Under the pieces are notes generated by a model. It worked only from the letters and a program-made list of their open reading frames with translations. It was not told the origin of the DNA and made no database searches. Both the position numbers and the translations under genes were made by a program. From assembly GCA_904063045.1 (NCBI GenBank), contig CAJFCJ010000024.1, positions 186,001-250,000 of the forward strand: a stretch of DNA of 64,000 bases. The letters are read 5' to 3'. Source of the DNA: Dimorphilus gyrociliatus (lineage: Eukaryota > Animalia > Annelida). This document shows positions 1,763 through 32,963 of this stretch, in pieces (within the stretch, counting starts at the first letter, position 1; each line of letters begins with the position of its first letter).

Positions 1763-2755
1763 TTATGTTTCTATTGGAGTTTTTATAACAGATAATGAGC
1801 GTCTTTCAGGAAAGAGTTTGTGAAATATTAAATATTTACGTAGTTCTTTCCTAAAAGCAGAATATCTAAAAGTATATATAAACGGATTTATAAAACAATT
1901 TACAAATATCATAAACACTGAAAATAGACCAAAATCTGTTTCCAAATTATATACAATACCAAGATTGTAACATAGGAAATATACTTGATTGAATATCCAA
2001 CAAAATAGGAAAGCGCCCGCAACTATTGCAAAAGTTTTAATACTGTTTCTTTTTACTCTTTCAGAAGTTTGAATTCCAGTAGATGGTTTAATAATTGTTG
2101 ACTTTTTTGCAAAAATAAACGCTATACCCATGTAGGAAAACATGATTGCTACAAGCGGTATGATAAATTGTACGCAAGTTAAACCAATACCAACAGCTTT
2201 TGCAACGGCTATACTTGGCCAATTCAGGAATAAACCGCAGGTACCGTTCGGCAGAACTATCGATGTAGGAACATGATAAGAAAATTCATATAATATTCCA
2301 AATATCCAAATACATATACAAAGAACAATTAGACAGCTTCGTTTAACATTTTTATGTTGTATGGGAAATCGAATAGATGCAAAACGCTCCAACGATAAGA
2401 ATACTAAATTGTAAGTTGACGCTATTAAAAGAGCCCATACTAAAACACCACCATACCAAGCTCTACAATACCATTCGCGCAGGGTAACACTTGAATTGGA
2501 CACATCCACTAGCCTCCTTGTCCAATATTCCAAAACAAGTAAAACCGAAGCTAAGCCGTCCAAAATACTCTGATTGATCAAAAATATCGTTGATGAGATT
2601 TTTTTCAAAGGACCTTTAGACCTGAGTAGAATAAAAAGAACAAACATATTTCCACTAGTTCCCAATATAGATATTAATGTATAAACAATATCTTGAAGAA
2701 CTTCTAGTTTTCTAGTTGAAGAATGTGCAATATTTGTTGTATTTCCTTCAATCAT
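1763..2755 (-). CDS. Orphan class A (rhodopsin-like) GPCR, cluster copy 1, intronless
   Basis: Seven hydrophobic segments with GN (TM1), NQSxxD (TM2), WYC/ERF (TM3), FIIP (TM5), CWIFNQ (TM6), NPFIY (TM7). The track start at 2782 is a GTG; the first ATG (MIEGNTT) is at 2755. Confidence 0.93.
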   Translation of the reverse strand: MIEGNTTNIAHSSTRKLEVLQDIVYTLISILGTSGNMFVLFILLRSKGPLKKISSTIFLINQSILDGLASVLLVLEYWTRRLVDVSNSSVTLREWYCRAWYGGVLVWALLIASTYNLVFLSLERFASIRFPIQHKNVKRSCLIVLCICIWIFGILYEFSYHVPTSIVLPNGTCGLFLNWPSIAVAKAVGIGLTCVQFIIPLVAIMFSYMGIAFIFAKKSTIIKPSTGIQTSERVKRNSIKTFAIVAGAFLFCWIFNQVYFLCYNLGIVYNLETDFGLFSVFMIFVNCFINPFIYTFRYSAFRKELRKYLIFHKLFPERRSLSVIKTPIET

Positions 2756-3414
2756 GGTAATTATTTGTCTAATATTCGCCACTCTACGATCAATTCATAG
2801 AGGTCGCTATTGCCTATCAATAACAAGAAATTAAGTATTTGCACTTCTACTATTTAAGTTATTAAAATTATTTTCCAAAGTATCTTCAGGAGGATAAAAA
2901 ATCTTCAAACGTATTTGATCATTTAAGTATGTGTGTTAAGTTTAGTTTACTTATTTATAGTGGTATATATGTATATATATCAGACATATATAGAATTGCA
3001 TGATAGAAAAAGTCTCCTCTCTACGTATTAGGTTAAGAGAAATAGTTGAAAAGAAAATGATAAAGAGATGTCGCAAAGTAATTCATTAAGAGGACAATAT
3101 CAAAATTTCCTTGAATCTTAATTATCTATATGTTTTTTAGGCTCTTTAAACCATCGAAATATTGTCTATATTTATTTATCTTTACTATTTTTATTGCTTC
3201 ATCCCTCTTTTTCTTACTTTATCATCTAATATAGATAATTCTGTAAACAAACAATCGTTTAAAGATGATTTATTTGAGAATAAAGTATCATTTAATACAC
3301 GCTGTTAAAATTCTCATATAACTCTAGTTTTGCACTTATTTTTGTCCTATGTTAGAAATTTGTCAATTAGTTTATTTCTTCGTAAAATGCAAATAGTAAG
3401 TTATGTAATGTTTG

Positions 3415-3428
3415 GCTCCATCTGTTGG
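3415..3428 (-). promoter_or_regulatory. CTCF-like motif CCAACAGATGGAGC in the shared GPCR1/GPCR2 promoter
   Basis: One mismatch in the GGC core; CC retained. Confidence 0.4.
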
Positions 3429-3745
3429 ACAAAAAGAGATTATACAAATACGCTGCAGGGTGAGAATATACTTTATTAGATGAAAATTACAATAACTAAA
3501 TATAGCTAAGGACTTAATGAAATGGAGACAAGCTTTAAAAGTTTTGTCTGGGATTTATTATCCAATTGAAGTTCACGTGACTTTGTTAAAGTGAAGGCGA
3601 TTGGTGGTACTGAGATGACATAAGTTGTGGATGTAATATACCTTGTGGAAACACTTAACATGGATCTTTCATATTCAAGATCAAGTAGCAGCCACATCGT
3701 TTATTCTAATTTTCTTGACGGAGAAAACTTTAAACTGGAAACGCA

Positions 3746-4777
3746 ATGAATTCCAATTCTGATAATACAACAAAGAAGGATGAACTACCTGTTGATCCAG
3801 AGCAGGAAAACATCGAATTAATGCAAGATATCATTTTTACAACTATATCTATCTTTGGAACGTTTGGGAATTTATTTGTTTTATTTATAATTTTGAAATC
3901 AAAAGGAAGATTGAGAACAGCTCTATCTACTATATTTATTATCAATCAAAGTCTATTGGATATGACGGCAGCTATCTTATTGTTTGCTGATCATTGGACA
4001 AGTAGATTAGTTGATGAGACTAAACTTACTGGAACATTTCTAATTTGGTATTGTCGTGCTTGGTACAAAGGAGCGTGGGTTTGGGGTATTTTAACTGGAT
4101 CGTCGTATAATTTGGTTCTTCTATCGTTAGAACGATATTTTTCAGTTATATTTCCAATCGCTCACAAGAATTTATCGAGGAGGAAAATAATCATCGCCGC
4201 TATTTTAGTTTGGCTTATTTTTATAAGCTACGAATTTTCACATCAAACGCCTACGAGCACTATTTCAGAGACAGGTCATTGCGCTCCTTTTTCTAAATGG
4301 CCAAATGATCTGATAAGGCGGTCAGTTGGAGTTTTGATCATAGCTATTCAATTTATAATACCGCTAATAATCATTGCTTTTTCCTACATTTCATTGGCAA
4401 TAACTTTTTCTAAGAAATCAGCTAGTGTTGCACCTTCACAACATGGTCAGGATATGTCTCAAAGGGTTAGAAAGAATAGTATTAAAACCTTTGCCATTGT
4501 AGCTTGCGCTTTTGTAATTTGTTGGATATTCAATCAGACGTACTTTTTAGGTTTTTATTTTGGTCTTGTCTCGTCTCTTACAGGATACTATTATCATTTC
4601 TCCGTATTTATGGTATTTGTTAATTGTTTTATTAATCCATTCATATACACATTTAGATATGGTGAATTTAAGAAAGAGTTACGTAAATATCGTCTATTTA
4701 AATTGTGTATGAGGTCTAAAGGTGAAACAAAAGAAGGAGCAAACATGTCAACTGATAAAACTAGTACAAATTACTAG
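3746..4777 (+). CDS. Orphan class A GPCR, cluster copy 2, intronless
   Basis: 343-aa ORF, 7TM with GN, NQSLLD, ERY, CWIFNQ, NPFIY and an N-terminal N-glycosylation sequon; divergently transcribed from copy 1. Confidence 0.95.
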   Translation: MNSNSDNTTKKDELPVDPEQENIELMQDIIFTTISIFGTFGNLFVLFIILKSKGRLRTALSTIFIINQSLLDMTAAILLFADHWTSRLVDETKLTGTFLIWYCRAWYKGAWVWGILTGSSYNLVLLSLERYFSVIFPIAHKNLSRRKIIIAAILVWLIFISYEFSHQTPTSTISETGHCAPFSKWPNDLIRRSVGVLIIAIQFIIPLIIIAFSYISLAITFSKKSASVAPSQHGQDMSQRVRKNSIKTFAIVACAFVICWIFNQTYFLGFYFGLVSSLTGYYYHFSVFMVFVNCFINPFIYTFRYGEFKKELRKYRLFKLCMRSKGETKEGANMSTDKTSTNY

Positions 4778-6858
4778 TTGCAATTAATTATTTCTCAATC
4801 TTACCATTTTAACAAATTAGATTGATGTTTATCAGGGTGTTCGTTCTAGAATAGCAAATTTTCAGACACGTACGAATACGCAAACACATAACACACACAG
4901 CTATACTCACTTACAAATATATATATACTAATATATATATATACTGCATAAATATGTACAGTATGTATATCCTTCTCTCTCTCTCTCTTACTCATGACAC
5001 TAAATTCATAACTGGTTAAGTGATGTTATGTGTCATTAAACTGTTGTTGTATATTAATTAATTCTTATTCTTTAACAATTTTTAGCTAAAATATGCAAAA
5101 TTAATTTACAAAGTACCATTAATCGTGCTAGTTGATTTGAATACACAAATAAAATATACAGTATTATGATATAATGCGTTATTAAAACGTTTATTAATCA
5201 GCCAAAAATAATCTAAAGTCTATTTAAAGGCAAATGTAGGTACACTATATTTATTAATATATAGACTTATATATTTATCATATTTGGTAGAATAAGAAAA
5301 GCACTCTTGCTCTTCGTCTATTTGAATAAAAGATAATTTATTTATTTTATATTAAATAGGGAGATTTTTTTTTGTTCCGATGTTAATCGACATTCTCTTC
5401 ACCTGAAATAATAAAGAGAATTTTATATATTTAGTGTGTTTGCATTAGAAACTATATGAATTAATATCCCGGTTAAACAACATCTTCGTTAGATCATCTA
5501 ACGATGAAAATTCAAAAGATTCATTTTTTTATCATACTAAAAGAAGTTCATTTCCTTTATCAAAAACCAGGCATCCGTAAGTTTTGGAGCATTTAGTTAC
5601 AGACTGAACTTGAAAGGGATTTTTCTGTTGTAAAATTATCCAAACAAACTTGCATTGTGATCATAAAAGACAATTTGACCTAAAAAGGGACTAACGGTAT
5701 CCTTCCATCCATTTTTATATAAAAAAGAAGGTTATCAAAATTTATCCTTGTTGAAATATGTTTATATAAAAATAGTTTCCAATTTAGATAAATAGATAGA
5801 GTAATTTAACATAATTATGATCATTAATTCTTTTGTATTTCATAAAGAATAGACAAATTTCACTTTTTATAGCTTTTCTTTCATAAAAATTATTTCTATA
5901 AAAAGCTCTTTCTCTTCCTCTTCTTCTCTGTATTATCTTTTCTCTTTTCTTTTTCTTATTTAAACATTTTACTGAACTTTACTTACATCCTTAAACTTTG
6001 TCTTCGTTAATTAACTTAACAAGTGATAAGAAAAAAAATGGAATATGAAGTATGCTGTATTATTAATCCTAAATTGATTATCCTTCCTCCTTTATTACTG
6101 TCTATTAGAGTTTCTTGTTTATTGTTTACTTTGTAAATTCTATTTTTCTTTTATCACAGACACTTTTAAAGAAGATCCTGGAGTGATAATTTTTATAATC
6201 CTTCATATTTTACATTATCAGTTAAAAGGATATTTGTGTAATAAGACCATCCAAGTTTTGTCTTTTTTATAATTAACATACAATACTATAATTACTTCTT
6301 TCTCAGTCTTTTGTTGCTTAAAAAATGAAAATTTCCTAAGGAGCTCACCTTTCGGGTGCATTCATCAGTATCTAAAAAATATTTAGTCATTTTGACTTTT
6401 ATCTCCTCTTATTTAATATTTTTTTGAGATGAAAGGATAAAACTTTCTATAGGTTTCCTCTATGTCAATAGCACTAGGGTTCTTTAAATTGTATCGATAT
6501 TTCTAGATCGTTTACTTATTTTACAAACTGCCAGTATAATCTGTTGAAAAGTGTTCTAGCCGACTATATATTTACTGCAGAAATTCGTTATGCCTAACGG
6601 CGCAATTTCTCTTTTTTGCATTTCCTGAAATCCTCATTTCTTTATTTTTGGTGCATTAAAATAAAAAGATTCATATGAACTATATGCATGCATTCCTATT
6701 TAATGAGTATACAATAATCTATAGTTGGAAAAAATGATAATTTAATTGAAAGTCTGTTTTTAATTAAAAGTCTATTTGTATTGAGAATTATTTGTTCACT
6801 AAAAGGGATTTTCCAAAATTTTCAACATCATTACGCTGCATATATATCATAATTATTA

Positions 6859-6872
6859 ATGCCATCTATTGG
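6859..6872 (-). promoter_or_regulatory. CTCF-like motif CCAATAGATGGCAT
   Basis: CTCF core match, between convergent GPCR2 and GPCR3. Confidence 0.5.
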
Positions 6873-7410
6873 ATATGAAGAAACAATCTCAAACCTACAT
6901 TCTTTCTAAAATCTATTTAAATATGAGCGGAGAAAGAATAGAAAGATGAAAAAGTTATATTATCTACTGTTAATTTAATAAAAACAAATAGAAAATGTTT
7001 GTTGTTTACTGAAATAGTATTTTCTCTCTTACAGTCTATATATATACACTTTATTTATGTATTATTATAAATACACAGATAAGACAAAGTCTTTACACTA
7101 AGTCCTCTTAACCTGTTTATATTTGCCCCTATTCTATATATAAGTTGATTTTCTGGACAAAAGAATTTATAATGATAGCATTCTTTTCTATATTTATATA
7201 ATTTTCGTTAAAATACAAATGATGAATGTAATACTAGATAATAAATTTTAAGCATATATTAAAATTTTATCATTCCAATTCAAAACATAATAGAATAACA
7301 TTTTATACTAAAAATGTGTTTACATTAGCACGAAATTTTCTCATTTTTCTATTAAAATTTGATACATGTATAAAAACAAGGAAGAATGGACAATGAAGAA
7401 ACAAGGAGAA

Positions 7411-7434
7411 AGAGAGAGAGAGAGAGAGAGAGAG
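7411..7434. repeat. (AG)n microsatellite
   Basis: Direct reading. Confidence 0.95.
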
Positions 7435-8175
7435 AATGATAAAAAATGTGTCAGATACCTATTTTTAGATATTCTATCTTGGTTTCTGTTTACATCATGT
7501 ATAAAGTTTATATAAACGAACTAATTTAGAATATTTAGGTACAGTTCCCTTTTTTTACTTTTACTCTAAAATCAATTTTATGTAATATTTTTTATAATAA
7601 AAAAAAGTTCACTACTTAAGTACAGAATCTTAGTATCTATTGAAAGTATATTTATACAAATAATACCATTTTTTACTCTTCATAATAAGTCTTTGATTTC
7701 TCTCGTTTTAAGTTTTTAGTTTTCTTTTTTTTTTAAAAAAAAGAAATAAATTAATTTTAACTTTATTTAAAATATTTAATATCATTCTTTACAATAAATG
7801 AAATTATTTTAAAAAGCGGCGGCAAAGAGATGTAATGTCAATACGTCTGTATAATAACAACCGTTCCTCAAACACCCTATTTACAGAATGATTACATCGA
7901 AGTTTTATTTTCCCTATGAACACTCTAGTATGAATTCTAGCGGTATTTTCCTGTTATTCTTCAAACATGATTACTTTATTTTATCATTATCCGAATGAAT
8001 GTGAAATGGAAATGATATTGCACTTTATTTTATTTTTTGCGTGTTTTATATTAAATATTTTCTCAAATATATTTTACTACAGATATGTATAGGAGTAATC
8101 AATTAATAAGTATACAAACAATTTCATATGGGCTTAGGGGAGTACGACGAAATCCTACAACATTAATATAATTAG

Positions 8176-9216
8176 TTAGAACTTTGATTCCTTTGTGTCC
8201 TTCTCCTCTGCTGAATTTTCACCACTTGTTGATATTTCGTTACTAACTTTAAAACATTGCTTAAATAGACGATATTTACGCAATTCTTTCTTAAATTCAC
8301 CATATCTAAATGTGTATATGAATGGATTAATAAAACAATTAACAAATACCATAAATTTTGAGAAATGATAATAATAGCCTGTAAGAGACGAGACAAGACC
8401 AAAATAAAAACCTAAAAAGTACGTCTGATTGAATATCCAACAAATTACAAAAGCGCAAGCTACAATGGCAAAGGTTTTAATACTATTCTTTCTAACCCTT
8501 TGAGGCATATCCTGAGCATGTTGTGAAGGCGCAACACTAGCTGATTTCTTAGAGAAACTTATTGCCAACGAAATATATGAGAAGGCAATGATTACTAGCG
8601 GTATAATGAATTGTATTACAACTATTAATATTCCTACAGCTCTTCTGGTAAGATCATTCGGCCAATTTGAAAAAGACCGACATAATCCGGTACTCAATAC
8701 TACAGTTGTACCCGATTGATGAGCATATTGATAGCAAATGAATACAATCCACACTAAAGTTGCTGCAATAATAGCCTTTCGCCTCGATAAATTCTTGTGA
8801 GCGACCGGATACATAACTGAAAAGTATCGTTCTAATGATAAAAGAACTAAATTATACGATGATCCTATAAGAACACCCCAAACAGTTACATGCCCATTCC
8901 AGCCGTGACAGTACCATTTTAACAATGATCCATGCATTGTTCTCTCGTCTATCAATTTTTCTGTCCAGTAGCTAATTCCAAGTAGAACGGAAGTTGCTGT
9001 GTCTATCAAACTTTGATTAATTAAAAAGATCGTTGACATCATTTTATGTATTGGTCCTCTGGATCGAAGTACAATTATTAAAACAAATATATTACCAAAA
9101 GTTCCTAAAACAGATATTATTGTATAAGTAACATCCTGAACGAATTCAATAGTTTCTTTTTCGTTTTTTATAGTATTTGAATTGTTTCTTATTATCGTTC
9201 CATTGAAAGTTATCAT
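8176..9216 (-). CDS. Orphan class A GPCR, cluster copy 3, intronless
   Basis: 346-aa ORF with the same motif set; C-terminal third nearly identical to copy 2. Confidence 0.95.
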   Translation of the reverse strand: MITFNGTIIRNNSNTIKNEKETIEFVQDVTYTIISVLGTFGNIFVLIIVLRSRGPIHKMMSTIFLINQSLIDTATSVLLGISYWTEKLIDERTMHGSLLKWYCHGWNGHVTVWGVLIGSSYNLVLLSLERYFSVMYPVAHKNLSRRKAIIAATLVWIVFICYQYAHQSGTTVVLSTGLCRSFSNWPNDLTRRAVGILIVVIQFIIPLVIIAFSYISLAISFSKKSASVAPSQHAQDMPQRVRKNSIKTFAIVACAFVICWIFNQTYFLGFYFGLVSSLTGYYYHFSKFMVFVNCFINPFIYTFRYGEFKKELRKYRLFKQCFKVSNEISTSGENSAEEKDTKESKF

Positions 9217-9448
9217 CTCACTTTTCTCTTCTTAATATAATGTTCCCAACATGAATGTTATTTTTATTACAGTTCTTACGAAATTTTGTCTCAGGTGTGC
9301 TCGAAAATTACTTTACAGCTTCATTTTTATAATTAAAATATCATCCAATAGACTCTTCTATGTTTATTCTATCCAATCACAATTCGTTTTAGAAAATATA
9401 ACACCTATTCTATAGTAAAATTTGTTGTTTTTTTTAACTACTCCAATA

Positions 9449-9467
9449 TAGACGTCAGTGACGTCTA
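9449..9467. promoter_or_regulatory. Perfect 9-bp inverted repeat forming a double CRE-like site
   Basis: TAGACGTCA-G-TGACGTCTA; each arm matches TGACGTCA at 7 of 8 bases; 233 bp upstream of the GPCR3 ATG. Confidence 0.5.
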
Positions 9468-9588
9468 ACTAATTTGCATAAATTGACAGAAATGGCTAAT
9501 ATTCTTTTAGAAATTAGTTTCTTTATTTAAATCTTTTTGGAGACATTAAACATTCAATTATGAATAGATGTAGGTATTGCATTTATAT

Positions 9589-9603
9589 GTGATAGATGGC
9601 GCC
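9589..9603 (+). promoter_or_regulatory. CTCF-like motif GTGATAGATGGCGCC upstream of GPCR3
   Basis: AGATGGCGC core. Confidence 0.5.
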
Positions 9604-10031
9604 AAAGATAAATATGAGAAAATGAAAATAGACGAAAAAAAAGGAAAATTATTATTATTCAATAAACAAACAAAGAAACTCTTGTTTAAAACGAAATATT
9701 CAACTTTTAATCTTTTAATGACTAATAACTTCTTTTTTTAATGTTTCTTAAGAGGATAAAGGGAAATACAGACTGTATGTACCTAATATATTTATTTGTT
9801 TATTTGTAAGTATATAGGTTTTGTTAGAAATTTCTAAGGAAAAATGTAGTATTTGATATCGTAGATGAATAGGCTAATAAAGGAAGCTAAGGAATATTTC
9901 TGTGGCTCTTTCATAAACAAAAGTATAGAGGGATACACTTTAAAATATCTCATTAAGAATAATTTTTAGGAATAGGGAAGAAAATATTCTAAAAACAATG
10001 AAAGTATCTTTTCGTATTATTTAATAATATT

Positions 10032-11012
10032 TTAAAATGAGCACTGTGTTCTCGCGGATGTTCCTTGTGAAGCATTTAATGGGTTCACCTCTTTCTTTTT
10101 AAAACAGTTACGCTTTAAAAGTTCTTTTTTAAATTCGTCATATCTAAAAGTATATATAAATGGATTAATAAAACAATTAACAAATACCATAATAACTGAA
10201 AAATGTCCAAATACTGTTTCTAAACTGTCGATTAATCCTATACTAAACAAGAAAAAGTAAATTTGATTAAATATCCAACAGAAAACAAAGGCTATTGAAA
10301 CTATAGCAAATGTTTTTATACTACTTTTGCGTATCCTCTGAGTTGTTTCATTCGCTATGCTAGATGTTCTCTTGACAAATGATAAGGATATCGATATGTA
10401 AATATATGATATAATTAGAAGTGGTAATATAAATTGAACAAGTACGACAAATATACCAACACCTCTAGAAGTTTCCAAATTAGGCATTTTAACAAATAAA
10501 CCACAATTACCATCTGGTAAAACAATCGTTGTTGGAACTTGCCTCGCTAGTTGATAGACTACACACACCAACCACAGAACTACACATAAGACAATTACTC
10601 TGTTTCGCGACAAATTTTTGTGCTGAATAGGATACTTTATGGAAACGTATCGTTCCAAGGAGAGAAACACAAGATTATATGTGGAGGCTACCATTATACC
10701 CCAAACAAAAACGCCTCCATACCATCCTCTACAATACCAGTTTAACAATCCGGAGCTCAAATCGGAGACGTCTACCAATTTTCTAGTCCAGTATTCAAGT
10801 GCCAGAAGAAAAGATGCCGAAGCGTCCAAAATACTTTGATTAATTAGAAAGATAGATGACAATGCTTTGTGAATTGAACCTTTTGACTTTAACACAATAT
10901 ATAAAACAAACAAATTTCCAAATATACCCAAGATTGCAATTAATGAAAATGCAATGTCTTGAACAAGTTCTAATTGAACAGAAGTTTCAGAATGAGAGGA
11001 GTTACCAGCCAT
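10032..11012 (-). CDS. Orphan class A GPCR, cluster copy 4, intronless
   Basis: 326-aa ORF, 7TM with GN, NQSILD, ERY, CWIFNQ, NPFIY. Confidence 0.95.
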   Translation of the reverse strand: MAGNSSHSETSVQLELVQDIAFSLIAILGIFGNLFVLYIVLKSKGSIHKALSSIFLINQSILDASASFLLALEYWTRKLVDVSDLSSGLLNWYCRGWYGGVFVWGIMVASTYNLVFLSLERYVSIKYPIQHKNLSRNRVIVLCVVLWLVCVVYQLARQVPTTIVLPDGNCGLFVKMPNLETSRGVGIFVVLVQFILPLLIISYIYISISLSFVKRTSSIANETTQRIRKSSIKTFAIVSIAFVFCWIFNQIYFFLFSIGLIDSLETVFGHFSVIMVFVNCFINPFIYTFRYDEFKKELLKRNCFKKKEVNPLNASQGTSARTQCSF

Positions 11013-11062
11013 ACTCTCTCTTCTAATCTTTAATAATCATAAGTAAAGAAAGTATCTATAAT

Positions 11063-11076
11063 TCTCCAGGGGGCGT
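11063..11076 (+). promoter_or_regulatory. CTCF-like motif TCTCCAGGGGGCGT about 50 bp upstream of GPCR4
   Basis: CAGGGGGCG core. Confidence 0.55.
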
Positions 11077-11441
11077 CTAAATATCAACTCCTCGACTAAG
11101 GTTTCGTTTAAGGATTTGAAATTATGTTAATTAACCTATGTGCTTTGGTTGTAAATTAGATTATCAAAACAAATACTTAATTATATTGAAAAAGTTTGAC
11201 TAATTAAATGCGCTATGTAATTTCTTTCATATCTTAAGTTTACCATAAAGTTTATATTTCATTTCTATGGAAACTAGAAATATCGTTAGTAGCTATTATA
11301 TTTTTAACGTGCTTTTATGCTAATAGAAACTAAACTGAAAAAAGAAATTAAGTAAATAGAGAAACGTTTGAGAGGCTTTTAGGAAATAAATAAGATCTAA
11401 CAAATATTAGAGTCCTAAGAATTATTAAATATCTAGATTCA

Positions 11442-11468
<27 letters not shown>
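11442..11468. repeat. (AT)n microsatellite
   Basis: Direct reading. Confidence 0.95.
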
Positions 11469-11473
<5 letters not shown>

Positions 11474-11881
11474 AATTGTGAATTGCAAAGCATTGATAGC
11501 CATATTCAGTCATAATTTTCAATAATAATAGGTACATATAAGGAATATAAAATAGTTTCAAAGAAATTATCTATAACTGCTATGTTTTGTCATCTCTAGA
11601 GTGAAAAAGAATACAGTTTTTATGTGCTTGAAACGTTAATCTTCCATACGGAATAGACACTTTTCTAACTCTTACCTTCTATAATATCCGGTCCATTTGT
11701 AAGATCAAGAACAAACACAGTCATACAGGCACTCTAAGATTACTTTTTTCTCAAAGTCTCACCTTTTATGTTTGACACTGACTTATAGGACGAAATAGTA
11801 TCACACTAAGGAAACAATAAAACTTCAGATTAACAAGTGAAATCTTTAGAATTTAATACAATCGAGGATCTCCGAAAAGCT

Positions 11882-11895
11882 GCGCCACCTATGAA
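11882..11895 (-). promoter_or_regulatory. CTCF-like motif TTCATAGGTGGCGC
   Basis: AGGTGGCGC core, between GPCR4 and GPCR5. Confidence 0.55.
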
Positions 11896-12263
11896 CCAGC
11901 TTACATAAAAACTATGTAACGATTGTCAGCCTAAGAATTAAGTACTTTCTTATTTTGAAGTTTGGAGGGAAAATATAAATATAATCAATAATTAATAATT
12001 CGTTCTAGACATCAGTTGTATAGTCATATTTTCAAGCTAATTATGTAAATATTCTCGTAAATGAACTTTTAGCATATGCAAATATATTTGGTGTGCATAT
12101 AGTTTATTATACATAATGTAACTGCTATATAAAATATACTTAAACAATACATAAATCTTTTTTTTTAAACAAAACAAGCAAAGTAGCTATTGTATCTTGT
12201 TTTCATATCTATAAATGGTTAGATTCCCAAGGAAATATTAATCATATTGCATATATATTGCAT

Positions 12264-12277
12264 ACGCCATCTATAGG
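12264..12277 (-). promoter_or_regulatory. CTCF-like motif CCTATAGATGGCGT
   Basis: CC..AGATGGCG core. Confidence 0.55.
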
Positions 12278-12795
12278 ATTTAAAATATGCATTTGAAATA
12301 AAGGCATCTTAAATAGGGCTTTATGATGTATAATAGAACATTATTAAATATAGAAGGATTATTAAATTTTTAGACACTACATATTTATATCACCATTATT
12401 TATATAGATATATATATTTTAGGTCTAGAATATAAAGGGTTAAAAATGTCTATATCATGACTAAATGACTGTTGTAAATTAACTTCAGAGATAAAATGAA
12501 GGTAACTAATCCATGCTTTGTAGAGTACATTGCTATGAATTTTCGCAAAATGAGCCTTCAAGCAATGTAAAACCAGCTTTTAATCTTCCTTTGGTTTAAA
12601 ACTTTAAAAAGCTATCATGTAGAATGCAAAATGAAACGATAATAAGATATATAATCATGTAACATTTTATTTTATACTAACAATGCAAAATTTAATCAAT
12701 ACATATGGAAATAGATATTGAAATATCATCATAAAAAAACCCCTTAAACTATCTTTGTAGGAAAATTATTGTAAATCTATCAAAAATATTACCAA

Positions 12796-13815
12796 CTACG
12801 ACTGATTTGTTGCTCTACTGTCATTTGAATGACTTAACTCTTCAACATGAACTATTAGTTCTTTCTTAATAAAAAATACTTTAAATATAGCATAACGATG
12901 TAATTCTCTTTTAAATTTATCATATCGAAATGTATAGATAAATGGATTAACGCAACAATTAACAAATACCATAAACACTGTAAATTGGTAATAATCTCCA
13001 TCTAACTGATGAATTAAATTGAATTGAAAGCCAAGGAAGTATGTTTGATTCCAAAACCAACAAATAATAAAGGCAAATGCGACTAAGGCGAATGTTTTTA
13101 TGCTGTTCTTTCTGACTCTTGAATTAAACATTTGGCTATTTTGACTCGGATTAATTGTAACATTCCTCTTTGCCAGTATTACTGCTAGAGATATATACGT
13201 AAATGCTATAATAGCTAACGGAAAGATAAACTGTATAAATATTATAAAAATTCCAACTACACGTCTCGTCAAATCATTCGGCCAGTTGATAAATTGTCCA
13301 CAAGTTCCATCCTCAAGAACTTTACTTGTTGTTGCCTGATGAGAGAACTGATACGGAATGAATATCAGCCATATTATTATAGCTATTATTATAGTCTTCT
13401 TTTGTGAAAAGTTCTTGTGAGCAACAACAAATCTTACGGATAAATAGCGTTCAATTGATAAAACTACCAAATTATATGTTGAGGCAACAAGAATACCCCA
13501 TACTGGGACTCCTCCAAACCATGCACTACAATACCATTTAATAGCAGTCGGACTAAGACTCTTCTGATCAACTAATCTCTCTGTCCAATGATCGGTCATA
13601 AGTAAAATCGAAGCTAAACCATCTAAAAGACTCTGATTTACCAGAAAAATTGTTGATAAAGACTTTTTCAAATTATTATTCGCTCTACAAACAATAATCA
13701 ATACAAAGGTATTTCCAATAGTTCCTAAAATTGAAATTGTTGTTATTATAATATCTTGTATTAGTTCCAACTTTGAATTAGAGTTAATGCTGCTGTTCAT
13801 CCTACTCGGTGGCAT
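12796..13815 (-). CDS. Orphan class A GPCR, cluster copy 5, intronless
   Basis: 7TM with GN, NQSLLD, ERY, CWFWNQ, NPFIY. The track start at 13875 is non-ATG; ATGs lie at 13815 (MPPSRM) and 13800 (MNSSIN). Confidence 0.93.
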   Translation of the reverse strand: MPPSRMNSSINSNSKLELIQDIIITTISILGTIGNTFVLIIVCRANNNLKKSLSTIFLVNQSLLDGLASILLMTDHWTERLVDQKSLSPTAIKWYCSAWFGGVPVWGILVASTYNLVVLSIERYLSVRFVVAHKNFSQKKTIIIAIIIWLIFIPYQFSHQATTSKVLEDGTCGQFINWPNDLTRRVVGIFIIFIQFIFPLAIIAFTYISLAVILAKRNVTINPSQNSQMFNSRVRKNSIKTFALVAFAFIICWFWNQTYFLGFQFNLIHQLDGDYYQFTVFMVFVNCCVNPFIYTFRYDKFKRELHRYAIFKVFFIKKELIVHVEELSHSNDSRATNQS

Positions 13816-13839
13816 GTACGGATCTGTAATACTCTTTAT

Positions 13840-13853
13840 CGCACAGAGGGCGT
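13840..13853 (+). promoter_or_regulatory. CTCF-like motif CGCACAGAGGGCGT about 25 bp upstream of the GPCR5 ATG
   Basis: CAGAGGGCG core. Confidence 0.5.
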
Positions 13854-14504
13854 CTAAAACATTTTTGTGCCACAAAAAAAAGAGTATCTAAAAAAAAGAC
13901 CTTCAATGGTAAAGTGAAAAAAATCGCAAAATTTCTATTATTTACTTTAGGGCTATAGCAGATAGTATAGACAAATAAATCTAATAAAGATAAGCTTGAA
14001 CATTTATATACAGTATATATCTCTCTATATATATAGATATAAATAAATAAATATCTACTTATATATACATATATAAATATTCCAACATAAGTATTTTTAT
14101 GTATGATTTAAAAAAGAGTACTACTTATACACAAGGACAAAAAGAGAATTCTCTCAGCTTTTTATCCATTTATTACAAGACAAAACAATCTTTTTTGAAG
14201 AGTATCATCAGTCGGCAGCTTATAAGTAGTTTTTATTCCGTATAAAATCATTATGATATACAATTTATTTGTTATTTATGCTATTTATTATGTCATTTAG
14301 ATGCTCTATTATTTTAGGCTTATTAACAAAAGTTTTTTTTTAACATTTATAATAATTTATGTTAATTATTCAAGTGCCTTAATTAATTTACACAAAATAA
14401 ATGTAAATCAGAAGTAAATCAATGATTTTTAATTATTGAATACAATATAAACAATTAAAAATGAAAAGCTTTAGATAGCTTTATTAAAGATGTACTTATA
14501 TACA

Positions 14505-19243: not shown

Positions 19244-20029
19244 TTACATTACAGAACAGACTGCAGATTTCTTCTTATCCCTGTGTGAAGAAACCGAAGT
19301 AACTGCAATATTGTATAAAATATTTTCAGCTGATTGGCTTTCATTTTCAAATACAAGAAATCCGCATTTGTTCATTATTGCCATGTGTTTACCTTCCTCT
19401 GTAGATACAAAACTATATTCTTCCTGCCTGTATTAATTTTTTACAAATATCTTTATATTATTTATTAAATAATACTTAGCAGTTTATTCTATTTACCTTA
19501 TATTGCATATTATAATAATTGGTATTGAATTATTTACAGTACTCTCTATCAATGGCACCCATCTTTCTGAAACATCCCAAAAACTAAATCTATCGTTTGG
19601 TGAATAAACTATAATAACTGCATGACTTTTTAATAATTCTTCTTGTCTTATTGCGTCTAGACTTTTATTAGAAGCTATTTCCGTTAGAACAATTTCACAC
19701 AGTACAGGTAGTTTTTTCCTTTCTTTTGCAGATTGTTTATTTAAAGGTACGGTAACAGTTTGTGAAAACACAAAATCCGTAGAATTAGTATAAAATTCGT
19801 CTAATCCATCTTGAAAAAATGATACTAGAGAAGTTATAAGATGGGTTTTTCCTGTATTTTTATTGCCTAAAACACATATTTTCCTAGTAATCGTCGAAGC
19901 TGTTGAGTATTTATGAACTGTTGTAAGCTTTTCTTTCTTCTTCTTTTTGTCTGTATTCTGTTCAATGTGAATAGTGGGATGTCCTACTCCAGGTAAGCGA
20001 TTGAAACAAGCTGAATTTCTAAAATCCAT
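19244..20029 (-). CDS. Atypical Rho/Ras-like small GTPase copy 1 (CaaX CSVM), 2 exons
   Basis: P-loop GNKNTGKT and Rho-like HAVIIVYSPNDRFSFWDVSERWVP. A phase-2 intron at 19428-19496 joins an exon ending KKKSAVCSVM*. Confidence 0.85.
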
Positions 20030-20261
20030 ATTAAGTTATAAAGTCTACCGCAATATCATAATCGCCAGCTAGCTTCTAACTTTCAAATAGACCGCTAGTC
20101 TAAACGAGAAACCTTTTAACCCACTTAATTTTTAGATTTATGTATTGATCCAATTTTTCTGCTCCCTGTATAAAACTTCTTTATCTATTTGTATGAAAGA
20201 ATAATATCTAGGGTGGATTAATAAATACATATACTGTATACTTTAGAAATAATAAATTCAT

Positions 20262-20276
20262 AGCGCCATCTGTAAG
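20262..20276 (-). promoter_or_regulatory. CTCF-like motif CTTACAGATGGCGCT upstream of GTPase copy 1
   Basis: AGATGGCGCT core. Confidence 0.5.
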
Positions 20277-20514
20277 ATTTTTTATCGATAGACAATTCAA
20301 AAGTATTGAATATTTACAATAGTACGTATTTTTGTATTAATACAAACACTTTATATTGTATCTACACCAAAAATTGAATATATATAATTTAATGGAATAA
20401 ACATGGATTATCGTAAAATAACTTTATTGTTAAAATACAAAAGTCATGGCTGTGACCCTTCGCAATGTCTTTCATACTATATGTTGCATTACTAAACAAT
20501 TAAATGTTTTCCGC

Positions 20515-21311
20515 CTACAATAAACAACAAACTTCATTTTTCTTCTTATAAACGTTTAACGATAAAATTAGATTCGTTATAGTCTTCATAAGATCTTCGA
20601 TTATTTGATTGTCATTTGTGAACGAGGCAAACTTTACACCATTAAGAAATGCTCTTTCTTGACCAACTTCTAAAGAAAAACATCGAATGTCGTCTTGTCT
20701 ATTAAAAAAGAAAAAAGTTATTATATTTGATTTTGCAGTCTACAATAGAAACATTAATTTAAATCTTACCTGTAATTATCAATAATTAATGCAGGTGTTG
20801 TTAATTTATGAATAAATTTCAACCATCTGTTTGTTAAATCATCGAAACTTGTTTGATCGTTTGATGAATAAACAAATATTATTAAATGACAATTGTTTAT
20901 TTCTTTTCTTCTTAATTCATCACATTCCTTCAATGAACTGATTTCAATAAATTCCAATTCAAGAAATTTACTGGCTTCTTTAGTTTGAAATTTTTCAGAA
21001 ACGCTTAAAAGTGGAATGTTAATTGTATATTTTGTCAGAAATCTTGAATAAACTCCATTTGATGAATAGCTACTCTCAATCCACGAAACTTTCCCCAATG
21101 ACTTAATTATATGTGTTTTACCAACATTCTTATTACCAAGAACACATACTTTTCGTTCGATATTAAGTTTTTTTCGACCATCATTATCTACTGGATTGTT
21201 AAAATTACCTGTAAAATAAGGTCCTTCGGGAACTTTATAGTCCATTGAGTCTAAATCTGGCCAAATCGAACCAAGATTTCCTATGCCAACTTTCCTCCAT
21301 CGTTGTTCCAT
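20515..21311 (-). CDS. Atypical Rho/Ras-like small GTPase copy 2 (CaaX CCLL), 2 exons
   Basis: P-loop GNKNVGKT and HLIIFVYSSNDQTSFDDLTNRW. A phase-2 intron at 20699-20769 joins an exon ending KKKNEVCCLL*. Confidence 0.85.
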
Positions 21312-21596
21312 ACTGAAGAAATTGTAGCTATCAACTGAAAGATACTAATCGCACTTTGATTACTAGTCTAGTGATCTACGCAATAATATGATTATTGTTG
21401 TGATTACTCCTTCTTATTTTATTTATTATTTATTATTCATAGACTAACATTTTATATCTGATTTAATCTCTTTTATTCCAACCTTAAAGAGTATAAATAA
21501 ATATAAATAGGATCAAAATTTCTTTTTCTTTATACGCTATTATGATATTTAATTATTAATAAATATTGAATAAATTTCCGGTCAGAATATATTTAA

Positions 21597-21599
<3 letters not shown>

Positions 21600-21634
<35 letters not shown>
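21600..21634. repeat. (AT)n microsatellite
   Basis: Direct reading. Confidence 0.95.
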
Positions 21635-21637
<3 letters not shown>

Positions 21638-22345
21638 TGATCGAAAAGTAGCAGGTAGCAATATCAAAGCATAGGCCAGGAAGGTGAGCAGACTGATTCC
21701 AAGCAACTTTATATTAGAATAATAGAATATTGCTTTGTAAAGAGACAGAATAACAATGGTTATGATTAAAAGGTATAAAAATATTGAACCGTGTAAGCGA
21801 GAATAAATAATCTTTACTGAAAAGGAATTTGAAAAGGAAGTAAAATTTTTTTAAATTAGAAAATAAGCTTTCCATAGAAAATAAAATCTCTTACAAATTG
21901 TCATATTAATAGTTCATTTATTAATTTTAAGTCTACATAGAAATGTCGTTCAACTACGACTTCTATAAAAAAAAATACTAAAATGTATACGTACATAATA
22001 TAAATAAGGTATCATTTTACATGTACAGATATACGCCTAATAAATTTTGTTAGAGCTAATTTTAACTTCTTTATTGATAAATAATTTAATTAAGGTATTA
22101 AATATAGTTTACTTTATTCCTATTTCAAATTGAAAAATTCAAGTGACTAATGTTAATTGCACAAGATTTAACATGGTTATGTAATTATTATATACTTTTT
22201 GTTAATTCTTGAATTTTCCAATGCTTAAACTAAAAATAGAAATAAAATTCAAACTTTAAACTTCAACATAAACAATCAGGTTACTTCGCACATACAGGAA
22301 TAATTTAATAATTTATTACACATATATATAGTTAGATCTTTCAAT

Positions 22346-23036
22346 TTACATTAAGCAGCATGAAGATGACTTCTCACGTTTTTTGGAGCATAGAGCAAAT
22401 ATTCCGATTTCTCTTAAACAATTCTGGATCGTTTCTTCGTCGTTGAAGAACTCCAAATGTAATGCATTATACTTCTTTGCTAAAGATTTTCCTTGTTGTT
22501 CTGACACATGGGGCTTTAGCCTATTTCTGATTTAAAAATCATATTGATTTAGTTATAAAGTTTATTAGCTATGATATTATGTACCTCGTGTTGCGGATAA
22601 ATATCTTTGGTATTTTTTCTGATAGGTATGCTGGAATCCAGTAGTTTTCAATACTTTCTAAACTTTCTCTATTTTGACTTGAATAGACAATAATAATTAG
22701 GTGACAGTTTGATATTTTGTCTTTCAAAATAGCTTCGTATGGATATGGTTTTATGTCCCAAAACTTTGCTGCTAAATATTTCCAATGAATGTTACCGTGC
22801 TCACTGTAAGTTAAAGTCATTTGAGTTTCCGCTGCATTTATATCAGAGTCACCCTTTTTTCCAGTGAATTTTTCGAAGATAAAAGACTTTCCAACCGTCA
22901 CATCTCCCAATAAACAAATGTCTTTTTTTGGAAAATTTTTAGCCTTTCCAGATTTACTAAGGGTACCTGTTGAAGCTCTTCTATAAAAGTCATCTTGGAA
23001 GCTTTTCGAAAACGAGTTTTCTTGAAATCCAATCAT
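22346..23036 (-). pseudogene. Atypical Rho/Ras-like small GTPase copy 3 (CaaX CCLM) with an apparent 1-bp frameshift in exon 2 (or an assembly error)
   Basis: P-loop GDVTVGKS and HLIIIVYSSQNRESLESIENYW; same phase-2 intron (22526-22584). The exon-2 frame ending KREKSSSCCLM* is reached only if one base is added in the TTT run at 22514-22516. Confidence 0.7.
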
Positions 23037-24039
23037 TTTGAATGTCGTTCGACTGTCAATCGTCAAGTGCAAAGTGAACACAAAGCTCCATAGCAAAAAT
23101 TTTCTTCCTTAATATAAAAAAAAATAGCTTTTTTCAATTGATTAAATAAGATTGTCTATGAATATTGTATAATAATATTAATCATGGTCCGTTCCCCTAT
23201 TATATGCTTCGAAATAGATATGCTATTAAAATATTTAATGAATTCACTTTATAACTGAGGAAGATAAGAGAAAGAGAGATAGAAGAGAGACAGCTGATTA
23301 AATAACTTCCAATTTCAACATCATAATATTCGATTTGTAATAAATGCTATTTTACATTTTAAAATTTGGTCTAAATGTAGAAAATTATTATAACGGAGCA
23401 TAAATATTAAAATATTTTAGCTATTCTTAATCAAATATAGTACAGAGAGTATTTATGGATTGTATTGAATGAAGACATATTACAATGAAGTTTTAGTGAA
23501 GCATTTACTTCAATTCTATGCTTCACCGGAATACGTGAGATATTTGTCTATTTTCTATGTGACCTATACTCCTTATCTCAGATCTGAAAGAAGAGCCTAT
23601 TATAATTGTAAAAGTAACTTTTCTAAGCTGCTTAAAGGACTATCTACAGATGAAAATGAATGAAACAATGGTTAATTACTCTACTTTAAATAGCTATACT
23701 AATGCATATATATATATAAATGTATATGTGATTGTAGAATATTTTCTTAATATATTAGTACGGCTAATATTTATCTGTCAATAGTCTTTGTTAACAAAAA
23801 AAAAGAGAAACACCCAATAGAGGGGTTCAAGATAATTTACTTCTCAATCCTTTCCTACTCTAGCAGAGAATCTTTTAAAACGAACATACAATAGAAACGA
23901 ACACGAAATAGAAAAATATGTAAATAAATGAAATATTTATATCTCTCTTTCTTTCTTTCTCTGTTTATGTAAATACATTGTAAATCAGAAGGAAAATAAA
24001 TAAGTATATATAGGCAAAATGAGTTTTAAAGATGCTTCA

Positions 24040-25371
24040 TTAAAGCATACAATCAGAGTCGACAACTAACGACGGTACTTTATAAATACCGCTATTTTTA
24101 ATATCTTCTAACATTTTTGGAACAATACAAATAACATATTCATTTTTCCGAAAACAATTCAAGTTGAGATAATTAAATGTATCAATAATATCATCTCTTA
24201 AAATTCCAGTAACCTTTACAAGTTCATCTATGCTTATAATTCCTCTATAATCTTCAATTATACTCATTAATTTCCATATCCAAAAACTTCTATAAGTCTT
24301 CTTACCCAAATCTGATATAGGTATTTCAGGTGTTCCTTGTTTTCCTTCAAGTTTAGTCAGTTCATAACTCAAGCCAATTAGAAATTTTCCATATCCATTT
24401 TTTTGATAGTGCGGTAAGATAACTATGCAGGCGACGTTATAGTCATCATCTGATTTCTTTTCCTTGCTAAAGTAGCCAATTAAATGTGCTCCTTGCCGAT
24501 CGACTTTGGTCAAAACATAAAAAACGAATGGGCCAATGTCAAAGAATACTGTCTTGTGATCGATGAATAATTTACAAAATAACGAGAGCAATTGACAATA
24601 TAATTTCTGAAAATGTTAGAAATATCATAAATAAATAATTAATAAGAAATTGACATATTTTACCTGTTCAGCTCCATCTATTTCGTAAACTTCTAATTGA
24701 TTTTTTTTATATATCTTTTTACCAGGTGGATGTCTAACGGCGCACTCTCCTTTATGATATCTATATGTTTTTTCCATTTCCATGTATTTTAAACAAAATT
24801 CACATATATATAACTTTTTACATCGACCAAAATTATTTGGATACGGTGAAAAATACCAAGTATCCATTTCTATTTTACCAAATTGAACTTGTTCAATATA
24901 TTTTATCATCGTCAGGTTTTCACGTTCCTTTTCAGCATCATCTTCAATATTTTCAGATTCTTCCTTTTGAATACTTTCTTGGAGATTAGTTTCCTCGTGC
25001 TTCCTCTTCATATTACGAGTTATCTTACGGCCTTCGCTTGTAGCTGGAGATTCGGGTTCTATTTTTAAATGATAAGATAAAAAATAAAGAAATTTCTTAT
25101 GTAAATATTAAAATAGACCTTCATTCTTTGGATTGTTAACTGAATTCTTTATTCGATCCGCCGTAACCCACTCATCTAATCGTCTATCCAGGCCTTCGTA
25201 ATGAATATAGTACTCTTCTATACCAGCGTTTAGACGGCGTTCTACTATACATCCTACCTGCGTTCCATCCTTTTCAATATTATAGTATGTACCAACTTGG
25301 AGATCTTGAGATGAAATTGACTTTGATCTTTGTTTTTTTAGATTTGACGCCGATTCATTTGTGGATGGCAT
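24040..25371 (-). CDS. KAT8: MYST-family histone acetyltransferase, KAT8/MOF-like, 3 coding exons
   Basis: Tudor-knot chromodomain (YYIHYEGLDRRLDEWV), RKITRNMKRKHEE, C2HC zinc finger (LYICEFCLKY...HKGEC), LFIDHKT, VACI, QKNGYGKFLI and PEIPISDLG. Confidence 0.88.
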
Positions 25372-32390: not shown

Positions 32391-32963
32391 ATGTCACCCT
32401 GGATTAGACGATTATCGGCAATAGTTGGTCATGATGTAGATTGTAATTTATTAATGGTAGGATTACCAAATTCTGGAAAAACAACTTTAATGAAACAGTT
32501 AAAGCCGCGAAATAAGAATTTGGATATAATTCAACCGCCAATAGAGAATGAATGTTCAACTTTATCTGGATTTTGGTTTGATCGCGTGTCTATTAAGGCT
32601 TTTAATTTGTGTACAAGTATAACTTCGCATATTGGATGCGCATGGGAAGAATTGTACCTTACTTCAAACGCTTTTATATTTACAATAAACTCAGCAGATC
32701 GTCTTACAATGCATTTGAATGGCGAATACTTACAAAAGGTCATATCAAAGGTTAAAGAGAACAGGCCTATATTAATCCTAGTAACCAAATACGATTACGG
32801 CGATGAAATGAATGATCTTCAAATATTAAATAGCTTAAATATACCAAGATTTATGGGTCCTAGAAGATGGAGATGCGTAACCGTAGACTTAACAACAGGC
32901 GAAGGTTTAAACGATGCCTTTGATTGGTTAGCCAACGAAATACGTAAAGTTACTTTTAATTAA
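32391..32963 (+). CDS. Degenerate ARF/ARL-like small GTPase, intronless
   Basis: 190-aa ORF: LLMVGLPNSGKTT (G1), AFIFTINSAD, PILILVTKYD (G4-like) and TTGEGLNDAFDWL (ARF C-terminal signature). No Gly2. Confidence 0.85.
   Translation: MSPWIRRLSAIVGHDVDCNLLMVGLPNSGKTTLMKQLKPRNKNLDIIQPPIENECSTLSGFWFDRVSIKAFNLCTSITSHIGCAWEELYLTSNAFIFTINSADRLTMHLNGEYLQKVISKVKENRPILILVTKYDYGDEMNDLQILNSLNIPRFMGPRRWRCVTVDLTTGEGLNDAFDWLANEIRKVTFN

Follow-up and report, generated by a model that had tools for sequence, protein, structure and literature searches.

The annelid Dimorphilus gyrociliatus, whose genome is compact (PMC7854359), carries three two-exon genes arranged head to tail on the minus strand of contig CAJFCJ010000024.1. 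They occupy positions 19244-23036 of the window analysed here, which is the whole 64,000-nucleotide stretch between positions 186,001 and 250,000 of that contig, an AT-rich piece of animal DNA with a GC content of 27-31%. We refer to the genes as G1, G2 and G3. The open reading frames of their first exons span 150-181 codons each, all on the minus strand. In each gene an AG acceptor follows 58-71 nt past the GT donor and leads into 59-60 further codons that end in a CaaX box, and all six exons are open frames. The three introns are in phase 2 and split an AG|R arginine codon directly after N-I, N-Y and N-T, respectively. The first-pass annotation, made from the letters of the DNA, had described a head-to-tail trio with a common phase-2 intron, P-loops, changed G3, G4 and G5 motifs and CaaX exons, and this description proved correct in every detail (Table 1).

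The RNA evidence consists of contigs of one public run, X1, whose library type is not on record. These contigs skip exactly the three predicted introns, with ends CT..AC that correspond to GT..AG on the minus strand; the trio is transcribed and every predicted junction agrees with the RNA. For G1, a contig spanning 19131-20077 contains the entire coding sequence and has 5′ and 3′ ends of its own. That of G2 begins at 21576, crosses the intron and ends at 20651. From the contig over G3 (22137-23047) the predicted intron is missing and, in addition, 59 nt within exon 1 (22806-22864). Because the splice ends of this additional skip are canonical only on the plus strand, we read it as the intron of a spliced antisense RNA, which the assembler probably merged with the sense mRNA. 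A (TA)17 microsatellite at 21600-21633 lies directly upstream of the 5′ end of the G2 contig. This tract may act as a TATA-like promoter element, in which case the 5′ untranslated region of G2 would, at about 265 nt, far exceed those of G1 and G3 in length.

According to an exact look-up, the public annotation represents the trio by two proteins, DgyrCDS13158 (P0002, 488 residues) and DgyrCDS13159 (P0151, 210 residues). P0151 is the same protein as our G3 model. P0002 fuses G2 to G1 via a small bridging exon at about 20118-20170, and thereby drops the VCCLL end of G2 with its CaaX box as well as the first residues of G1, including the start codon. We rejected this fusion as the main product, because the G1 contig shows no splicing at the annotated acceptor and extends past it to 20077, and because no X1 contig covers the bridging exon. 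The orthologues of G2 and G1 in a related worm each have their own start and stop.

Table 1. Coordinates of the trio and of the two dispersed family genes (window positions unless prefixed by another sequence name).
Feature	Position	Strand	Details
G1 exon 1	20029..19497	-	ATG at 20029; 177 codons + 2 bases; ends C-N-I-(R); Pfam Ras 1.4e-07, Roc 2.1e-07; whole exon in RNA contig
G1 P-loop	19844-19867	-	GNKNTGKT
G1, G3-motif position	19670-19681	-	EIAS
G1 intron	19496..19428	-	69 nt, phase 2, GTAAAT..ACAG; skipped exactly in X1 contig (joint 19426->19496, cut +1)
G1 exon 2	19427..19244	-	60 codons + stop; degenerate G5 region; tail HRDKKKSAVCSVM; RNA contig cover; same reading in P0002:254-488
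G1 CaaX box	19247-19258	-	CSVM
G1 protein			238 aa, end CSVM
G2 exon 1	21311..20770	-	ATG at 21311; 180 codons + 2 bases; ends D-N-Y-(R); Pfam Roc 2.9e-06, Ras 8.1e-05; RNA contig 20770-21576
G2 P-loop	21114-21137	-	GNKNVGKT
G2, G3-motif position	20934-20945	-	EISS
G2 intron	20769..20699	-	71 nt, phase 2; skipped exactly in X1 contig
G2 exon 2	20698..20515	-	60 codons + stop; tail VYKKKNEVCCLL; RNA cover 20651-20698 only; orthologue exon 2 ends CSIL
G2 CaaX box	20518-20529	-	CCLL
G2 protein			241 aa, end CCLL
G3 exon 1	23036..22585	-	ATG at 23036; 150 codons + 2 bases; ends R-N-T-(R); Pfam Ras 3e-06; identical to public protein P0151
G3 P-loop	22884-22907	-	GDVTVGKS
G3, G3-motif position	22746-22757	-	DIKP
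59-nt skip inside G3 exon 1	22806..22864	+	joint 22805->22865, GT..AG, no ambiguity; ends GTAAGT...TTTTTTCCAG, canonical on plus strand only
G3 intron	22584..22527	-	58 nt, phase 2; skipped exactly in X1 contig
G3 exon 2	22526..22346	-	59 codons + stop; tail CSKKREKSSSCCLM; RNA contig 22137-22526; matches P0151
G3 CaaX box	22349-22360	-	CCLM
G3 protein			210 aa, end CCLM
C9 gene	L008:1273-2067		265 residues, end CNLL; long N-terminal extension, intact P-loop, degenerate G3 and G4 motifs
C6 gene DgyrCDS4519	L009:1276-2037	-	end CCIS; long N-terminal extension, intact P-loop, degenerate G3 and G4 motifs

Family members and their distribution

We scored 1.84 billion (1.84e9) protein representatives with a profile built from five exon-1 sequences. 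It gave 643 matches at E≤1e-3, only four of which reach E≤1e-30 (P0002, P0003, P0001 and P0004), and a fifth family member, P0006, was found at 5.6e-16. All five come from D. gyrociliatus or from one relative (DNA runs SRR23372216, SRR23372228, SRR23372229 and SRR23372231), and no protein outside these two worms was found at E≤1e-30. The stronger remaining matches that we examined (P0005, P0007 and P0009, which fall between 1e-10 and 1e-16, as well as P0010 and P0011) are Rab- or Rho-like proteins with several domains, the scores of which sum, while the weaker ones include ordinary single-domain GTPases and Miro proteins. The lineage-specific family proposed in the first-pass annotation is borne out by this search, which supports a restriction, as far as sampled, to D. 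gyrociliatus and its relative.

The gene order is the same in the relative, with the orthologues of G2 and G1 on a single contig (L004) and that of G2 upstream. The phase-2 intron of this G2 orthologue is 74 nt long and occupies the corresponding position, and the protein terminates in CSIL. The relative's third gene, P0006, has the same intron phase, reads N-Y-R-D at the G4 motif and also ends in CSIL; its placement as the G3 orthologue was neither supported nor rejected in the approximately unbiased test (p-AU 0.312) on the maximum-likelihood tree described below.

A search of the D. gyrociliatus genome with the family profile revealed two dispersed single-exon members, on C9 and C6 (Table 1). 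The C6 gene has an orthologue, P0153, which is 59% identical and likewise ends in CCIS. Word-indexed protein searches returned one match for G1 exon 1, none for the C9 paralogue and, for the C6 paralogue, nothing beyond its own annotation and a single orthologue. The maximum-likelihood tree comprised the family, 15 of the worm's own small GTPases, whose subfamily labels were read from sequence, and both Miro domains. The trio, the relative's three genes and the C9 and C6 genes form an eight-row clade with a support of 97/95, and the family sits in an unresolved polytomy relative to the other GTPases in the tree. As delimited by the profile and this grouping, the family comprises five genes in the D. 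gyrociliatus genome, so that the trio of the first reading is better described as part of a five-gene family. The same reading had spoken of an undescribed system; what we find is a protein family and not a system of several parts.

Further GTPase genes were seen in passing. A single-exon gene for an Arf/Arl-like GTPase of 190 residues (Pfam Arf 5.7e-20, P-loop GLPNSGKT) lies on the plus strand of the window at 32391-32963. Elsewhere in the genome, on C13 (944896-1072683), C57, C61 and C63, there are about ten open frames of 436-493 residues with an N-terminal Ras/Roc-like domain (Pfam Ras E about 1e-11), which look like another expanded GTPase family. The trio's other neighbours in the window are of different kinds. 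Exons of a MYST-family histone acetyltransferase (24040-25011, minus strand; Pfam MOZ_SAS 6.9e-58) adjoin G3, with no apparent functional link, and five tandem single-exon genes of mixed orientation for rhodopsin-type G-protein-coupled receptors of 326-359 residues occupy 1763-13875; the one that was checked matched 7tm_1 at 1.5e-26.

Fold and nucleotide pocket

As spliced queries we used the public proteins, namely P0002:254-488 for G1 (without the first three residues), P0002:1-236 for G2 (without VCCLL) and P0151 for G3. All three pass the Pfam models for Ras and Roc, but weakly: for G1, G2 and G3, respectively, PF00071 (Ras) gave 40.2, 25.2 and 37.5 bits versus a curated cut-off of 21.6, and PF08477 (Roc) gave 30.8, 27.0 and 27.2 versus a curated cut-off of 27. 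Exon 2 alone had no match in Pfam. The fold was examined with AlphaFold2 models of G1 and G3, as suggested in the first-pass annotation, and a confident G-domain fold was obtained for both. The mean predicted local distance difference test scores are 79.3 (G1) and 79.4 (G3), and the six strands and five helices correspond to the standard G domain, with the N-terminal 35-45 residues disordered. VIA-align superposed the models on chains of Rab8, Rab6 and KRAS with Z about 22 and a root-mean-square deviation of 1.8-2.0 Å over about 160 residues, and Foldseek returned E about 1e-11 for the G-domain models.

The trio are non-canonical members of the Ras superfamily, placed there by fold and P-loop. 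Searches of the ESM Atlas and of structures yielded generic Ras, Rab and Rho neighbours alike, and no subfamily could be assigned from them. The label "Rho-like" given at first is not supported, since the helix that Rho proteins insert between β5 and α4 is found in neither the G1 nor the G3 model: the gap from β5 (168-174) to α4 (184-193) of the G1 model spans about 9 residues, and the corresponding gap of the G3 model about 10. Compared with the sequences of solved structures, the family profile matched the Miro1 N-terminal GTPase (1.5e-10), EhRabX3 (1.8e-07) and RhoA (2.8e-06). Full-length G1 also matched the Miro1 N-terminal GTPase first, followed by REM1 (5.2e-05), GEM (5.4e-05) and RAD, while G3 alone matched Rab22 and Rab1, weakly. 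By sequence, the nearest known relative would be the Miro N-terminal GTPase domain, at a weak level of similarity.

In small GTPases the P-loop binds phosphates, the glycine of DxxG and the glutamine next to it serve γ-phosphate sensing and catalysis, and the aspartate of NKxD confers guanine specificity. The P-loops of G1, G2 and G3 are intact, and in the alignment the pattern GxxxxGK[ST] is invariant in all eight family sequences, across paralogues and both species. The G3 motif does not conform to DxxG(Q) in any of the trio; the position of the γ-phosphate-sensing glycine is taken by Ser in G1 and G2 and by Pro in G3, and that of the catalytic glutamine by Asn, Leu or Tyr. The G4 motif reads N-I-R-Q (G1), N-Y-R-Q (G2) and N-T-R-N (G3) instead of [NT]KxD. 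Across the family the aspartate position holds Gln, Gln, Asn or Ser, and Asp is kept only in P0006. No SAK-type G5 motif was found in the three spliced sequences. A Ser or Thr two residues ahead of β2 occupies the location of the switch I Thr, both in the alignment and in the AlphaFold2 models.

The proteins end in CSVM, CCLL and CCLM, each preceded by a lysine- or arginine-rich stretch. Farnesylation follows where X of the CaaX box is M or S, and geranylgeranylation where it is L. The cysteine is kept across both species and all paralogues (CSIL in two orthologues, CNLL in the C9 gene, CCIS in the C6 gene and P0153), and these conserved ends fit membrane anchoring. Together with the P-loop pattern and the N-x-R of G4, the CaaX cysteine is retained throughout the family. 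The alignment supports the view that the changed G3, G4 and G5 motifs represent conserved replacement and not random decay.

For exon 1, the ratio of nonsynonymous to synonymous substitution rates (dN/dS) relative to the relative's orthologue is 0.30 in G1 and 0.26 in G2, with synonymous sites near saturation; between G3 and P0006 synonymous sites are saturated and the ratio is not computable. Identity to the relative's orthologues is 56-58%, and between paralogues 24-38%, or 20-38% over the paralogues in which the P-loop pattern is invariant. It is distributed unevenly: a block of β3, switch II and α3 is 79% identical between G1 and its orthologue while the linker is 29% identical, and the first 33 residues of G2, which contain an N-terminal motif, are 76% identical to those of its orthologue. 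These comparisons indicate purifying selection, strongest on the block of β3, switch II, α2, β4 and α3 and on the N-terminal peptide motif. As judged from them, the subfamily is real and taxon-restricted and evolves fast yet under constraint; it consists of prenylatable G-domain proteins whose non-canonical nucleotide pocket is conserved.

Possible modes of action

We hypothesize, with a probability of roughly 0.55, that G1, G2 and G3 are separate transcribed genes whose products are prenylated, constitutive and non-cycling membrane adaptors of the Ras superfamily. A farnesyl group (CSVM, CCLM) or a geranylgeranyl group (CCLL), in combination with the basic tail, would hold the proteins on a membrane, and the P-loop would still hold a nucleotide triphosphate. 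A normal GTP/GDP cycle driven by guanine nucleotide exchange factors and GTPase-activating proteins would not take place, because the guanine-specific Asp, the γ-phosphate-sensing Gly and the catalytic Gln are absent. Each of these three elements, namely the membrane location, the holding of a nucleotide and the lack of a normal cycle, is probable. The proteins would then act constitutively, without cycling, in the manner of Rnd or RhoH, and their partners would bind the conserved switch II/α3 face and the N-terminal motif.

Several points weigh against this hypothesis. All RNA evidence comes from the single run X1; the CCLL end of G2 lies beyond the end of its contig, and the sole contig over G3 lacks the 59 nt of exon 1, which shifts the frame, so that an intact mRNA of G3 is still a prediction. 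Long branches meet in the clade that unites the trio with the C9 and C6 genes, and monophyly of the family with the Miro N-terminal GTPase is not part of the best tree; constraining it costs 9.8 log-likelihood units and is neither supported nor rejected (p-AU 0.138). The Miro1 N-terminal GTPase, which has no DxxGQ, was crystallised holding GTP (10.1101/729251), and a changed G3 motif alone is therefore no proof of a dead enzyme. Ras-like GTP hydrolysis is reported for Miro N-terminal GTPase constructs, in work cited in 10.1101/729251, and a non-canonical G3 motif can thus still support catalysis. Motifs are the basis for all statements on nucleotide binding, base preference, hydrolysis and prenylation, and also for the terms "hydrolysis-dead or nucleotide-promiscuous" and "scaffold or decoy" of the first-pass annotation.

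Could the proteins instead be working enzymes? One explanation, which we consider possible although unlikely, is that they are NTPases whose base preference has shifted (to ATP, xanthine nucleotides or any nucleoside triphosphate) and whose catalytic residues are non-canonical, acting as switches or slow timers and not as dead scaffolds. The P-loop, conserved in eight of eight family sequences, and the Ser/Thr at the switch I location agree with such activity, as does the replacement of the G4 aspartate, given that Asp-to-Asn is the classical change from guanine to xanthine specificity (Ras D119N, EF-Tu D138N). Moreover, hydrolysis of ATP, CTP and GTP is reported for the Miro C-terminal GTPase (cited in 10.1101/729251). 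Activity of this kind is harder to reconcile with the Ser or Pro at the γ-phosphate-sensing position and with the Asn, Leu or Tyr in place of the glutamine; no alternative catalytic residue was identified. A more specific version, which we regard as doubtful, is that the base pocket was rebuilt (NKxD to N-x-R-Q/N, SAK to x-N-[DE]) while phosphate binding was kept, and that the family uses a non-GTP nucleotide (ATP, xanthine or another purine), having been born in one annelid lineage, possibly from a Miro-like domain. If true, nature would have produced a small "G" protein that is anchored to membranes and has switched its nucleotide specificity.

It is rather improbable that the proteins bind no nucleotide at all, like the class i pseudoGTPases CENP-M, p190RhoGAP and AAGAB, the G domain serving as an interaction module on a lipid anchor. 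The G3, G4 and G5 motifs are all non-canonical, and such proteins with a normal fold are documented (PMC12490416, PMC5593906), but a GxxxxGK[ST] pattern that stays invariant over paralogues of such low identity and over both species is hard to explain without phosphate binding. That the genes are decaying, functionless tandem duplicates under noise transcription is very unlikely: the fast evolution and the broken G3 frame in its only RNA contig would suit decay, but six of six exons are open, intron phase and CaaX ends are kept in a second species, dN/dS is 0.26-0.30 and conservation is block-wise and non-uniform. Least probable of all is ordinary orthology to Rnd, RhoH, RGK or Miro, with an odd appearance due to the fast-evolving genome. 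The top matches to Miro1, REM1, GEM and RAD, at 1e-10 to 1e-5, are weak; a canonical Miro of 658 residues with EF_assoc domains is encoded separately in the genome; the Rho insert is absent; and outside the two worms nothing reaches E≤1e-30, the matches examined at 1e-10 to 1e-16 being multi-domain proteins with summed scores. We rank the constitutive non-cycling adaptor first, the NTPase with an altered base second and the nucleotide-free module third.

What does a G domain do once GTP cycling stops, if the P-loop and the lipid anchor are kept? The family offers a natural experiment on this question. Atypical and pseudo small GTPases are known mostly from a few vertebrate proteins, and here one lineage has a whole family of them. 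The finding is limited to a single non-model worm and one relative, at the level of sequence. In a reference annelid genome, the annotation had fused two of these genes and hidden one CaaX box, and two further members lay elsewhere in the genome.

Comparison with known atypical GTPases

Among solved structures, the Miro N-terminal GTPase is the best sequence match to the family profile, about a thousandfold ahead of the next family. It has a non-canonical G3 motif of its own, D-Y-S-E in the human protein and D-Y-N-A in the worm's Miro, which replaces DxxGQ. Two further stretches are shared, [VI]-T-[VI]-P in β2 (V-T-V-P in the family, I-T-I-P in Miro) and R-W-[IV]-P-L-I in α3 (R-W-V-P-L-I in the family, R-W-I-P-L-I in Miro), and the ITIP surface of Miro has been noted as conserved (10.1101/729251). 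On the other hand, Miro has two GTPase domains around EF hands and a transmembrane tail anchor, and keeps NKxD, whereas each protein of the trio consists of one domain, is 210-241 residues long with a CaaX end, and has lost NKxD and SAK. No EF_assoc or EF-hand match to Pfam was found in the trio, and the worm's separate canonical Miro is encoded on C19.

Rnd1-3 and RhoH provide the working analogy for the adaptor hypothesis, being CaaX-anchored small G proteins with terminal extensions. They are constitutively GTP-bound, prenylated and non-cycling, and are controlled by abundance or modification. One structure row of the Atlas carries the name RhoH. However, Rnd and RhoH keep DxxG and NKxD, bind GTP specifically, lack only the catalytic residues and carry the Rho insert, while the trio have neither the Rho insert nor the base-recognition motifs. 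The RGK proteins (Rad, Rem and Gem/Kir) are the second-best solved matches to full-length G1 and resemble it in a non-canonical G3 motif and an N-terminal extension. They keep NKxD and have a long C-terminal calmodulin-binding extension without a CaaX box.

EhRabX3 of Entamoeba, the second solved match to the family profile, is likewise an atypical GTPase with a degenerate domain. It differs in having two fused G domains per chain and in belonging to an unrelated lineage, and the match spans only about 40 residues. Finally, the class i pseudoGTPase domains, defined by the absence of nucleotide binding (PMC12490416), share with the trio a G-domain fold and degenerate G motifs. These domains, which include CENP-M, pG1 and pG2 of p190RhoGAP and AAGAB, are used for protein binding (PMC5593906, PMC12490416). 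In contrast to them, as they have lost the P-loop and bind no nucleotide, each of the trio is a free-standing CaaX protein that keeps an invariant P-loop.

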